A stretch of 64,000 nucleotides of DNA, taken from NCBI RefSeq assembly GCF_006345805.1, contig NC_042997.1, positions 194,618,001 to 194,682,000 of the forward strand, in the 5' to 3' direction. Below are positions 27,006-34,597 of this stretch, in pieces. Position 1 is the stretch's first letter; every line of letters begins with the position of its first letter. Under the pieces are notes generated by a model, which ran no database searches, was not told where the DNA came from, and saw nothing but the letters and a program-made list of their open reading frames with translations. This DNA comes from Octopus sinensis (taxonomy: Eukaryota). The translations under genes were made by a program, and so were the position numbers.

Positions 27006-27165
27006 TAGTCCCGAGCTGGCTAATTAGATACTGGCCCGGTTTAGCCTTCCTTCATTTAAGGTTTAGGGTCGTAAGGGTTCCCAATGGGAACTTTAGGAAA
27101 TTTTTCGGATCTATTCTTACAGTTACTGGGTGGTATCCTGGTTGTCTGGGATGGTCCTGATTAGG
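27006..27165 (+). repeat. Diverged copy of the R2 3' UTR distal block
   Basis: Colinear homology with 34280-34435 (GTCCC.AGCTGGCTAATTAGAT..GGCCC.GTTTAGC..GGGTTCCCAA.GGG.AC..TTCTTACA). Confidence 0.75.
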
Positions 27166-27319
27166 TTTCCTATTACTGAAATTTTGTTTGGTGGGCCTTG
27201 GACACTTCAGGTGATTCCTTGATAGGGATCGCAAAGTTACTATTGGACCCAATTGACAATGCCTGGAATTTAAGAGCCAGCTAGTGGTGAGTCCATGAAG
27301 AAGCTCACTGCTGGCAACG

Positions 27320-29950
27320 GGTGGATGCACTGCCTGGCGGAGCCTTTCGCAGCCTGCAACTGGGTGTTGGTTAGTTGGCTGGTAGGTACTCTAGTCAGTT
27401 GGGACGGTGGTTTCACGCCTTCTTTAAGTTTCACTTTATCGTTTCGGCCATGTACTCATGGAAATTGCCACAAAGATAGAAGAATGAGTAATAAAGATAC
27501 TAAACATACGGCAACCAGGCGCCGATAAACTGGTGGACTGTGGGTCCGGGACGGGTCAGCAGGTCAGGCTAGACGTAATACCCTAATATGTTCGGCCGAT
27601 TTGCTAACTTCCCCAGCAGGGGACAACAGGCCATCTCCACTGCAAGGTAAAGTTAGTGGGCCACAGATATATGACGAGACCGGTACCAGGTGCTCTATAT
27701 TGCGCCTGACACTGAAATATACTAGAAATAGACCAGGCATCTTTAGACTAGATTACCCCACACAAACTCTGGTAGTGAAAGGCTTCCAGCTGCCGCTGGA
27801 CCTAGCACATGACCCCATAAATGACGTCCATTCTCTTACTTTAGAAATCGACAGAGATGAGGTCACTAGGGACCTCCCCCATGACGTCCATTCTCTTAAT
27901 TTAGAAATGGGCTGAGAGGAGGTAGTGAGGGTATCAAGCCTCACTCCAGCAGGGAGCAAATATTCGCTGCCTGTTCTCAGTGCGTCGTACTCCATAGCCT
28001 GTCCGCTATGTCCTCTGCACTTCTCTTCTCCCCAAAGATGGGGAGATCATTTAGAATGTAGACATGGTATTAGACCTGTCTACAGATGTAGTAAATGTGG
28101 TAGGGAAAGCGGACACCTCCATTCAATGAGGTGTCATGCCAGCTTGTGTAATGGTGCATCTGATGCACCTGACCCTAGTCCTACTCGGTCCTTTTTCCAG
28201 TGTGACCACTGCAGTTGTTCTTTTTTGATGGCTGTAGGCCAATAACAACATGAACACCATAAAAATCCTGTGGCTGCGAATGCACGTAGGATGGCTGCTC
28301 ATAAAGAGCAGCTGGCAAAGAAGCGTGCTGATCGGGCAGCCGTTGCCGAGGCCTTAAGCCGAAGATGCAGACAGTCAGACGACAAAGTAGCAGTCCTCGT
28401 GGCGAAGGAGGCTGAGTTCTTGAAGGCAGGAGTTAGGTTAATCAATGCAGCCATTGCATGGTTCCTACCGGGCAAAACTGCCAAACAGGTAGGTTCCAAG
28501 AGGGTGGCCCTGGCCAAAAGGACTCGTGAGAGTCATCAAGGATCAGGGCGCCCTGTGGCCGATTCCCAGCCACAAGTCGAGGGAGGACCCCAGTCCTGTT
28601 TAGACTGGAGAGATCACTTCCTCGGCACTGCATGTCCCGGGCATACCTGTCAGTACGCGGTCTTCTCCGAGACCCTATTGGAAATCGTGGAAGACAGGAC
28701 CACGGCTGCCTGGGGCTCTTTTCTTAGAAGAGTAGTGGAGCACTATAATAAGAGGCGTAGGGAAGATGCTGCCAGAGAAAACAGTGTAAATATATCTAAT
28801 AATAAGCCTAACTTTCGGCGGCAGGGTAAGCTCATTAGATACGCCAGCCACCAGGACTTATACAAGAAGGATACGAAGAGGCTCCTTGCAGTTGTGTTAG
28901 GCAAGGATACAGAGCAGGGATGCCCAATCCCTATGTATGCTATAGAAGAGTTCTATAGGGGAAGGCTTTCCACACCAGGCCCTGAGGTTGACCTCTCCGA
29001 CTACTCTTCCTCCTCCCAGGTTGAGAACAGTCCTATTTTGCGGCCGTTCTCGGTGGAGGAGATTAAAATTAGTCGGAGACGAATGAACATCTCCTCAGCA
29101 GCGGGTCCTGATGGACTCGCAATTAGTGAGATTAAATCCATGGACCCAGCTATTCTTACGAATGTTTGCAACTGCATGCTCCTGGCAGGTAAAGTACCCG
29201 ATATCCTGAAGAGTGGTAGATCCGTCCTCGCATCAAAGAGGGCGGAAGATCCATATGATCTTACAAATTGGCGACCACTGACGATATGGTCCACGGTATA
29301 TCGTCTTTTTACTAAAATGGTCACAAAATGTATGCTTCAGGTAACTCCCCTTAATCCAAGCCAACATGGCTTTATCCGCGCTGACAGCTGCAGTGAGAAT
29401 TCGTTTCTCCTTCGGCAGCTTGTCAGCCGGGAGAGAGGGTGTCCTATCTAGGACTGAACATTCCCACATGGAATTTGAGCTCATGACGAGAATTTACTTC
29501 TGAATCAGTGAAGCATGTGTCACTAGATATAAGTAAGATATGCAGGGCTCCGCTGAAACCCCGACAAAAATTCCTCTTGCTGCAGCAGTATTAACTGCCT
29601 AGGCTTTTTAATAGTCTAGTAGAGGTGCTGCCATCAAGAGGAATTCTTGAGCGGCTTGACACAGCCATCCGCATGGGGGCTAGGAGAATGTTACATCTCC
29701 CTGAAACTACTTCCTCTTCCTTCCTTTATAGCAACCGGCGTGACGGAAGGTTGAGTCTTCACCAGATGGTGAGACTTATACCGAAATGCCTCATTCGCTG
29801 TAATCTTCGCCTGCTGACCTCTGGATATGACCGTTAGAAAGCTTGCGGATTCTGAAGAACTAGCTGAACAGAACCAGCAATTTATAGCAACCTATGACTT
29901 GCCGTTCCTACCTGTGGGCGCTACTGAGTACAATACTGATAACCAGCGCG
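27320..29950 (+). mobile_element. R2-A-type non-LTR retrotransposon, copy 1 (three zinc fingers, Myb, partial RT; internally deleted and 3'-truncated)
   Basis: CPLCPLHFSS..HLECRH (CCHH), CSKCGRESGHLHSMRCHASLC (CCHC), CDHC..H..H, Myb (FLPGKTAKQVGSKR) and RT (SAAGPDGL, NWRPLTI, QHGFIRADSCSENSFLL). Confidence 0.88.
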
Positions 29951-33468: not shown

Positions 33469-34440
33469 GATCTCCCTGGCAGAACCTATAGTGTGGGAGA
33501 CTCCGCCGACTCTGGGGCGGTACGAAAGACGGGGCTCCGGTCCCTCCTCTCCTATGCGTGCGATTGGCTCACTTGAGTCCTGAGCACGCGTCATGGGGAG
33601 GCAATTGGTAATAGCTGGATAAGTAGGCCAGATAGGATTACAGAGGGGTGCTAATTGGGTCTTCTCAAGGTGCGCTCTAACATGTATCCTACCCGAGAAA
33701 CTCCGACACTTGGGTCCCGAGGGGACTCCACAAGTCCGAGATGTTGAGTAGGGGCAGAGATAATTTCTCATATCAGTGGAGTATGTATGTGGCGCTCTTA
33801 AAGGGCCACGACTTGCCAGGCACAATAAAATATGTAGCCTGGTGGCGAAAGAAGCCACAGACTATGGTTGGAGTGTCAGTGTGGAGCCTGTGATGCCTTG
33901 TGGGTGTGGCACTGGAAGCCCTGGGCATACATGACAGGTCATTTCCACGATTACTCAGCCGGACAGCAATGTTACTTACGAACTATATGCTGAGAGACTA
34001 GCTCTCAGCATGGGGGTCTTGCATTCATGACCCCAGTACGATGACATAGGATTGACCTAATCAAAAAGACAAATTAAAAAGAAAACTGGCTGTGACTAAA
34101 TAACGACACTGTTTCAGAGGATATTTTAGCTTTTTTTTTTAACACTTATAAAATATTGTTTGGGACAGTGGGATCACCTTGGCTAAGAGTAAAGTAATGC
34201 CATGTGTCCTGTGCACATCACTAAGACGAGGCATAAGTGAGACCACCCACTATAAATAAAGGGAATCAGCGACTTAAAAGTCCCAAGCTGGCTAATTAGA
34301 TGCCGGCCCAGTTTAGCTATCTTCATTGAGGTGTATTGTCGCGTGGGTTCCCAACGGGGACTACAGTAATTTATACGATCGTTTCTTACAACTAAAAGGT
34401 GGGTCCTTGGTTGTTTGAGAGGGTCACGTTTAGATCTCTG
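33313..34440 (+). mobile_element. R2 copy 3: short internally deleted element (ribozyme, post-RT/CCHC/partial endonuclease, 3' UTR)
   Basis: The ribozyme is followed within about 130 nt by IGNSWISRPDRITEGC.LGLLKVRSNMYPTRE, a decayed CCHC (AEIISHISGVC) and RLARHNKICSLVAKEATDYGWSVSVEP. No ZF, Myb or RT sequence lies between them. Confidence 0.7.
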
Positions 34441-34441
34441 C

Positions 34442-34597
34442 CTAGCAAAACGAACTGGCATGGACGGATCGGCGGAGAAAGAAGACCTTGTTGAGCTTGA
34501 CTAGTCCGGTTCTGTGAGAGCACACAGTAGGCATAGCATAGGTGGTAGCATTCGCCGCTTCGGTCGTTCGGCATGGTGTCAGCTGGCCAGTTTGGTA
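34442..34597 (+). pseudogene. Decayed 28S rRNA fragment (region just downstream of the canonical R2 site)
   Basis: GGATCGGCGGAGAAAGAAGACCTTGTTGAGCTTGACTAGTCC...GCATAGGTGG matches conserved LSU GAATCAGCGGGGAAAGAAGACCCTGTTGAGCTTGACTCTAGT...GCATAGGTGGGAG. Confidence 0.85.

Follow-up and report, generated by a model that had tools for sequence, protein, structure and literature searches.

A dead R2 block in Octopus sinensis with a circularly permuted unit of one clade-A lineage lying between two halves of another

A 64,000-nucleotide stretch of the Octopus sinensis genome (contig NC_042997.1, positions 194,618,001 to 194,682,000; hereafter the window) carries, at 27007-34600, a block derived from R2, a retrotransposon that lacks long terminal repeats (non-LTR) and is specific to 28S ribosomal RNA (rRNA) genes. 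We read this block, with a probability of roughly 0.5, as a dead and rearranged fossil made from two R2 clade-A lineages, both of which still exist in Octopus. An earlier reading made from the sequence alone had described it as a tandem array of three R2 copies. The R2-derived segments are real, but the first and third of them (copies 1 and 3) are parts of one element (lineage 1), and copy 2 belongs to a permuted unit of another (lineage 2) that lies inside it. What can be observed directly is a permuted lineage-2 unit nested in lineage 1, a flanking direct repeat that we call X, and a scrap of 28S sequence at the right-hand end. All R2 copies in the block are dead, and it has no present function. 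It consists of decayed members of known R2 families in an unusual nested and permuted arrangement, and is a structural fossil rather than a new system. All features of the block are given on the + strand unless stated otherwise.

The copies belong to R2 clade A and represent two anciently separated octopod lineages. As had been recognized from the motifs, copies 1 and 2 both carry the zinc-finger and Myb features of this clade, with CCHH-CCHC-CCHH fingers followed by Myb and a reverse transcriptase (RT), and they align with each other. The fingers of copy 1 lie at 27991-28236, and its third finger and Myb are degraded; those of copy 2 start at ~30660, and its RT is complete and followed by the thumb. 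When its frameshifts were stitched, copy 2 matched solved proteins in the order A-clade R2 (E = 4e-104), R2Bm (2e-58), and LINE-1 ORF2 (5e-13), and it aligned to residues 13-914 of the 1121 in the A-clade R2 structure, with the alignment beginning inside the first zinc finger (a paper on A-clade R2 structures from vertebrates, PMC12180492, cites 9NL2). Judged by both this Protein Data Bank search and a neighbour-joining tree, the RT and thumb are of the R2 type and stand nearer to that clade than to the other non-LTR groups. The tree, which had been proposed as a check, put all octopod elements among the three-finger mollusc R2s, with copy 2 beside R2-1_OVu and R2-1_OSi and copy 1 beside the R2 of an Octopus vulgaris array. 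Neither the tree nor the protein comparison took in NeSL, Utopia, or HERO sequences, and we do not assign the copies to those groups, as the R2 families nearest to them are inserted in 28S and have 28S flanks on record in the literature. Relatives of both lineages occupy the canonical 28S site (TTAAGG/TAGCCAAATGCC), and the lineage-2 fragment has its 5' junction with that site between 33341 and 33342. The C-terminal CCHC/endonuclease region is gone from copy 2, has lost its core in the 3' part of lineage 1, and is present in intact O. vulgaris relatives. R2-A elements in molluscs, and the coexistence of R2 lineages, have been published already; PMC13188248 lists R2-1_OVu and R2-1_OSi.

The two lineages are clearly diverged, as had been suspected. 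Copies 1 and 2 share only 39-54% of their amino acids (aa), and a blastn comparison with the O. vulgaris array R2 gave 71-80% nucleotide (nt) identity for copies 1 and 3 versus only 63-68% for copy 2. In addition, the proportion of synonymous differences between copies 1 and 2 (pS) is 0.79, i.e., saturated, whereas that of non-synonymous differences (pN) is 0.35. Since the synonymous differences are saturated and the non-synonymous ones are constrained, the two copies must have diverged as functioning lineages, and we rejected an in situ duplication as their common origin on the same grounds.

Copy 1 (27165-29940) comprises a leader or 5' untranslated region (UTR), an N-terminal extension, the three zinc fingers, Myb, RT motifs 0-2, and the thumb. 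Copy 3 (33591-34278) contains open reading frame (ORF) aa 456-552 (the linker and CCHC region), ORF aa 633-663, and the 3' UTR. Four matches were obtained by blastn in the O. vulgaris array locus on OX597831.1 (hereafter L001): 27422-29425 and 29425-29921 of copy 1 correspond to 40221-42248 and 42804-43293 (71-75% identity), and 33591-33888 and 33880-34007 of copy 3 correspond to 43378-43671 and 43886-44014 (80% identity), so that the two copies form one colinear chain. By tblastn, copy 1 reaches aa 432 of the O. vulgaris ORF at 29940 and copy 3 begins at aa 456, so that the break points complement each other with at most 24 codons between them. At the amino acid level, the identity of copy 3 to this ORF is 73-84%, versus only 50% for the neighbouring tail of copy 2. 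On a family hidden Markov model (HMM) of 902 positions, copy 1 covers positions 93-323 and 502-622 and the segment 33592-33898 covers 684-785. At the outer ends, the leader at 27303-27374 matches positions 111-185 of the O. vulgaris unit (z = 4.7), and just short of X, at 34236-34272, stands a terminal motif (AGTGAGACCACCCACTATAAATAAAGGGAA) that corresponds to the 3' end of the O. vulgaris R2 (z = 7.3-7.7), with a few bases separating it from X. Because the chain in L001 is colinear, the ORF break points are complementary, and a native 5' leader and 3' motif are both in place, these alignments identify copies 1 and 3 as a single lineage-1 element in two pieces, whose native ends lie at ~27165 and 34278 and which is interrupted in the linker between thumb and endonuclease. 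The nearest proteins to copy 1 are the O. vulgaris gene models P0019-P0021 (57-61% identity), encoded at L001, whose sequence mixes R2 copies with pieces of rDNA.

This element is itself damaged. The sequence-only reading had given copy 1 an RT and had both copies 1 and 2 losing their 3' ends just after it. Motifs 0-2 and the thumb are indeed kept in copy 1, but its catalytic core was removed by a 555-bp internal deletion at 29425. As to the 3' ends, that of copy 1 is the "short copy 3", and only copy 2 truly lacks the CCHC and restriction-like endonuclease (RLE) region and the 3' UTR. Copy 3 retains the CCHC region as well as the end of the ORF, but a deletion has taken ~215 bp (~80 codons) out of its RLE core. 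The N-terminal extension also carries an in-frame 60-nt tandem duplication (27821-27863 and 27881-27923, 88% identical), which must be old because O. vulgaris P0021 has the same repeated motif. Between the lineages lie 144 nt (29941-30084), possibly a decayed continuation of copy 1, for which neither the lineage-1 ORF of O. vulgaris (z = 0.3) nor 28S upstream sequence gave a significant match. A continuation of copy 1 to aa 479 and a 16-nt motif shared by the stretches following both truncated ORFs were considered and rejected as not significant, and alignment rejected copy 3 as a 5' UTR homologue of copies 1 and 2. A mimic of the 28S target seen by eye at the break point of the lineage-1 ORF (a 15-mer with 11-12 matches) was also dropped, because about one such match per element is expected by chance and the geometry of the joint is unlike that of a target-primed insertion.

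Copy 2 (30085-33287) runs from nt ~232 of the lineage-2 5' UTR through the zinc fingers, Myb, RT, and thumb to the linker, covers positions 123-701 of the family HMM, and contains several stops and frameshifts. Its N-terminal 372 aa are 76% identical to R2-1_OSi. The R2-1_OVu and R2-1_OSi sequences and their flanks were taken from Table S2 of PMC13188248, and the nucleotide comparison covers the 5' part of R2-1_OVu. Within that part, nt 245-379 match 30099-30219 at 75%, and a local alignment pairs nt 232-268 with 30085-30122 (z = 7.8). The missing beginning of the element was found downstream of copy 2: R2-1_OVu nt 1-209 correspond to 33342-33549 (84%, E = 2e-59), and local alignment of nt 160-265 with 33500-33602 (z = 15.7) extends this to the first ~265 nt of the 5' UTR (33342-33602). 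Immediately before it, at 33331-33341, stands CTCTCTTAAGG, an exact octopus 28S 11-mer that is the upstream half of the canonical R2 target (28S -11 to -1, numbered relative to the R2 site), and the resulting junction at 33331-33350 (CTCTCTTAAGG/GTTGCTGCC) matches that published for R2-1_OVu. It had been proposed that the elements re-targeted a 28S-like site carried at their own 5' ends; only these 11 nt (33331-33341) were found, which is far too short for a target and looks like the ordinary 28S/R2 5' junction of R2-1_OVu. The interval between copy 2 and the 11-mer (33288-33330) is a junction filler (the "40-mer"), of which 33293-33329 is 92% identical to L001 33490-33526; in L001 this 37-nt counterpart precedes decayed 28S +9 to +108.

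Read from left to right, lineage 2 thus runs from nt 232 to the ORF linker, through a junction with 28S -11 to -1, and then from nt 1 to nt 265, which amounts to about one unit with a 33-nt overlap. Judged from this segment order, the lineage-2 element is a circularly permuted piece of about one unit (3.5 kb) lying between the lineage-1 halves, and it resembles a one-unit cut from a head-to-tail R2 dimer or a linearised one-unit circle. Microhomology is present at both joints between the lineages, where 10-12 nt fit both partners (30086-30097 and 33591-33602). We estimate the chance of complementary break points at a few per cent per element, which makes the combination very unlikely to be fortuitous.

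The displaced 5' UTR includes the conserved 5' RNA element of mollusc R2-A. At 33342-33560, as well as at L001 33931-34130, it reads CTGCCTTGnCGnGGCAAGAGAGCTTA … AGGTyCAACCATnCCGAATTGGT … GGACnAACGAAAG; the element is conserved across octopus, Eledone, and scallop R2s with some compensatory pairs. It is probably the region of the R2 self-cleaving (HDV-like) ribozyme; no Rfam ribozyme family matched it.

X is a 158-nt direct repeat that brackets the whole block, with its two copies 7,272 bp apart. The left copy (27007-27164) ends where the lineage-1 leader begins, and the right copy (34279-34433), 74% identical to it (E = 7e-20), starts at, or no more than a few bases from, the R2 3' terminus. 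The left copy had been taken for a 3' UTR relic, which did not hold: X has no match to the R2 3' UTR, to + strand 28S +1 to +67, or to the O. vulgaris loci. Where X begins in the window, the O. vulgaris copies instead have TAGCCAAATGCC. An R2 3' end preceding the left X was rejected, with nothing R2-like found to the left of 27007, and so was X as decayed 28S +1 to +67, there being no + strand similarity to generic or octopus 28S. On the minus strand (34261-34372 and 27025-27059), the reverse complement of X together with the last R2 bases resembles 28S -52 to +58 (z = 4.6 and 3.0), including an uninterrupted site-like AAGATAGCTAAA and an exact CTAATTAG. This likeness may be due to chance or may mark an inverted 28S relic.

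A decayed 28S fragment, noted already in the sequence-only reading, follows the right X at 34434-34600. It spans 28S +68 to ~+250 relative to the R2 site and shares 87% identity with the 28S of O. vulgaris (nhmmer E = 1e-10; z = 14-28 versus shuffles); from 34601 on, an unrelated repeat cuts it off. Local alignment from +68 gave z = 14, and the Rfam large-subunit (LSU) model gave only 14 bits. The scrap carries the Octopus-type GGTAGCATTCGC (34544-34555), as in O. vulgaris and O. sinensis and unlike Eledone and Sepia. The 26% divergence of X is about twice the 13% decay of this piece, which fits X copies that were identical when formed in a single old event. Exact and 3-mismatch searches found no 28S downstream half-site in the window, and there is no canonical R2/28S 3' junction, as the R2 3' end abuts X. 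Likewise, no 28S upstream sequence was found before copy 1, before copy 2, or to the left of X. Sequence from an rRNA gene thus stands in a context outside ribosomal DNA (rDNA), as in an rDNA orphon, at 34434-34600 and 33331-33341.

Two O. vulgaris loci show what R2-containing DNA can become in octopus. At L001 20957-44419 (OX597831.1, ~79.80-79.85 Mb), at least 4 near-full-length R2 units of 5.35 kb, 93-95% identical, are joined head to tail. Of 28S, their linker (AATTAAA/TAG/TTTC/CTCTCTT/GTGGGG) keeps no more than the downstream TAG and the upstream CTCTCTT, and it also contains an R2 5' start in triplicate; in O. vulgaris head-to-tail R2 arrays, the 28S linkers measure 3-7 nt. This array lies amid 18S and 28S fragments and has a canonical R2/28S 3' junction (with the 28S 3' half) at its end. 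We found no description of it in the literature searched. Gene models P0019 and P0020 (L001 10001-36548 and 40799-41890) are chimeras spliced from the Myb and N-terminal regions of successive R2 copies, i.e., annotation artefacts. The second locus (hereafter L002), on another chromosome, occupies 2285-33359 of its own stretch (OX597842.1, ~25.64-25.68 Mb) and consists of at least 5 repeats. Each combines 28S -175 to -5 with an R2 cut short at unit position 3451 and a non-R2 flank that is the same in every repeat; an rDNA/R2 orphon has here been amplified segmentally. The R2s begin in one of two ways, either with the leader (the long form) or at unit position 1161, directly behind CTCTCTT (the short form). 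Since one locus is a head-to-tail array and the other a set of repeated units, R2-containing DNA has been amplified and rearranged at the DNA level in octopus. By analogy, head-to-tail arrays such as those of O. vulgaris are a plausible source of the permuted unit.

As the history of the block, we favour the capture of a lineage-2 unit into a lineage-1 R2 next to X and 28S, which is part of the best explanation and to which we give about even odds. Lineage-2 R2 copies would first have formed a head-to-tail series separated by only a few bases of 28S, an arrangement that lineage-1 copies show in today's O. vulgaris. A unit-length piece or circle from such an array would then have been captured in a break within a lineage-1 R2, via the 10-12 nt microhomologies at both joints. 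The lineage-1 element would earlier have been placed beside a pseudo-28S remnant with a 158-nt duplication, which may have arisen as an unusually long target-site duplication or as a scar of recombination. The RT core, the RLE core, and the 3' part of lineage 2 would have been lost to deletions at a later time, followed by ~13% point decay.

Several points weigh against this reading. A target duplication of 158 bp is far longer than known R2 junction changes, and the sequence to the left of the left X is not 28S-like. The 144 nt at 29941-30084 are unplaced, so the lineage-1 halves could overlap or leave a gap. R2-1_OVu was compared at its 5' part only, so that the 40-mer is no more than a candidate for the lineage-2 3' end, and X may belong to some R2 3' UTR. 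Moreover, the mechanism is inferred from one locus, and the cyclic segment order fits one period of a higher-order tandem repeat equally well.

That last arrangement is the alternative that survives best, although we consider it unlikely. The block would be one period of a higher-order tandem repeat or the product of a Campbell-type integration, with a cyclic unit of 7,272 bp made up of the lineage-1 5' part, lineage-2 nt 232 to the linker, the junction, lineage-2 nt 1-265, the lineage-1 3' part, and X. One turn plus a second X would then be what is left of an eroded longer array, or the result of an X-carrying circle recombining with a chromosomal X beside 28S. The X copies, 7,272 bp apart, do bound the block exactly; each element is permuted relative to the other, which makes the order cyclic; and in O. 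vulgaris, units that contain R2 have been amplified into tandem or segmental repeats. However, only a single period is present, with nothing R2-like to the left of 27007, and the two illegitimate joints between lineages 1 and 2 would still need an explanation.

A history at the RNA level is improbable in our view. In a single retrotransposition with serial template switching, the RT would pass from a lineage-1 RNA to a lineage-2 RNA, jump end to end from a lineage-2 5' end with a short 28S leader to another lineage-2 RNA, and return to lineage 1. Template jumping by the R2 reverse transcriptase is established biochemistry. A jump of the RT from the end of one co-transcript to the end of another would produce the order seen at the junction (downstream-type filler, 28S -11 to -1, R2 5' end), and the internal joints show microhomology. 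Yet this route calls for two internal switches that leave and re-enter the lineage-1 RNA within ~70 nt, as well as a lineage-2 RNA without its whole 3' part, and nothing in the sequence demands joining at the RNA rather than the DNA level.

Even less probable is the landing pad that had been proposed for the block. Here, an rDNA orphon would have taken three successive R2s, or each R2 would have re-targeted a 28S-like site at the previous 5' end, and their 3' parts would have been lost independently. Its link to rDNA stands loosely, as the block derives from R2-rich, rDNA-derived DNA; the serial insertions do not. All three segments share one orientation, 28S scrap stands at the right end, and one internal 5' end carries 11 nt of 28S upstream sequence. 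But copies 1 and 3 are of the same lineage and complementary, precisely the first 231 nt that copy 2 lacks sit downstream of it, and the boundary between copies 1 and 2 has no 28S sequence. In addition, 11 nt of 28S is not a target, and target-primed insertion leaves intact 3' and truncated 5' ends, the opposite of the pattern here. An assembly artefact from mis-joined reads is the least credible option: R2/rDNA regions are hard to assemble and the O. vulgaris gene models there are visibly chimeric, but the repeated pieces in the block are short and only 70-88% identical, so that there is nothing to confuse an assembler, and the joints show microhomology and coherent decay.

Going beyond the favoured capture, one may speculate, as a long shot that we rate between the tandem-repeat and template-switching histories, that octopod head-to-tail R2 arrays shed unit-length circles that re-integrate by microhomology even into other R2 copies, with the window holding the fossil of one such event. 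Such circles might exist as extrachromosomal DNA, or they might be cDNA from an RT that went round a circular or dimeric RNA template repeatedly. If true, circle re-integration would offer a strictly rDNA-specific element a route to leave the rDNA and build satellite-like arrays.

The surroundings of the block are transposon-rich animal DNA, and unrelated transposon remnants flank it on both sides. Rfam at gathering thresholds found no rRNA gene in the whole 64 kb (no 18S, 5.8S, or intact 28S, in agreement with the sequence-only reading), and only a full-length U6 small nuclear RNA gene at 47158-47266 on the - strand (100 bits). Rfam scans of 24-38 kb and of both flanks gave no rRNA or ribozyme at useful scores apart from the 14-bit LSU match, and no spliced-leader or U2 sequence was found near the block. 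The remnants comprise a piggyBac-type transposase (DDE_Tnp_1_7) at 2813-3949, a Tc5/pogo DNA-binding domain at 12902-13552, an APE-type LINE endonuclease at 15740-17289, and another LINE RT at 24737-25800, just upstream of the R2 block. The ORF at 26176-26574, which had been called a Merlin relic, reached no Pfam transposase family. To the right, an unrelated repeat of ~0.9-1.3 kb occurs twice in direct orientation (34601-35511 and 35988-37337, 80-84% identical) with an inverted segment, and its first copy begins exactly at the end of the 28S scrap (34601).

R2 is the model site-specific non-LTR retrotransposon and is under development for transgene insertion, while its exit from the 28S site, its formation of arrays, and recombination between its lineages are poorly documented outside insects. 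As a dead relic, the locus has evidential rather than functional value. It shows two old R2-A lineages coexisting in an octopod, and that non-rDNA R2 DNA can arise by rearrangement rather than by mis-targeted insertion. Taken together with the O. vulgaris arrays, it suggests that head-to-tail R2 arrays with near-zero 28S linkers are a recurrent cephalopod structure.

Among known systems, R2-1_OVu and R2-1_OSi, the 28S-specific R2s of O. vulgaris and O. sinensis (Table S2 of PMC13188248), form the family to which copy 2 and 33342-33602 belong. The window copy shares with them 76% of amino acids over 372 aa, 84% of the first 209 nt of the 5' UTR, the 5' junction, the three fingers, and Myb; unlike them, it is dead, has no endonuclease part or 3' UTR, is circularly permuted, and lies outside a 28S gene. 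Copies 1 and 3 belong with a second O. vulgaris R2 lineage, for which we found no published name (the arrays on OX597831.1 and OX597842.1, i.e., L001 and L002; 71-80% nt and 57-84% aa identity), and which has the 5' leader, N-terminal extension, and 3'-terminal motif seen in copies 1 and 3. In O. vulgaris these copies are young (93-95% identical) and almost intact, and they adjoin one another head to tail or 28S through canonical junctions, whereas the window copy is old, split, and internally deleted.

Precedents exist for non-canonical or shifted R2/28S junctions, for R2 copies without 28S flanks, and for apparently non-specific families, among them fish R2s (2016, PMC5035012). In the fish, the 28S-like part is upstream 28S within the 3' UTR, whereas X has no significant + strand 28S similarity, and the relatives of both window lineages have canonical junctions. 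R2 SIDEs are non-autonomous derivatives of R2 that are short and internally deleted (Eickbush and Eickbush 2012, PMC3414825). The segment 33342-34278 is superficially like one, with an R2 5' end joined to an R2 3' end; we rejected that identity, as the 5' piece is of lineage 2 and the 3' piece is of lineage 1 and the exact complement of copy 1.

Parallels in kind come from Drosophila, where there are reports of non-rDNA R2 copies, of R1 arrays in tandem, and of an array of R1/R2 fusions that lies outside the rDNA. One R2 lineage lying inside another with circular permutation is an arrangement not described there. What the Drosophila and octopus cases have in common is rDNA-specific elements outside functional rDNA, very short 28S remnants at the joins, and two-element chimeras amplified or rearranged at the DNA level.

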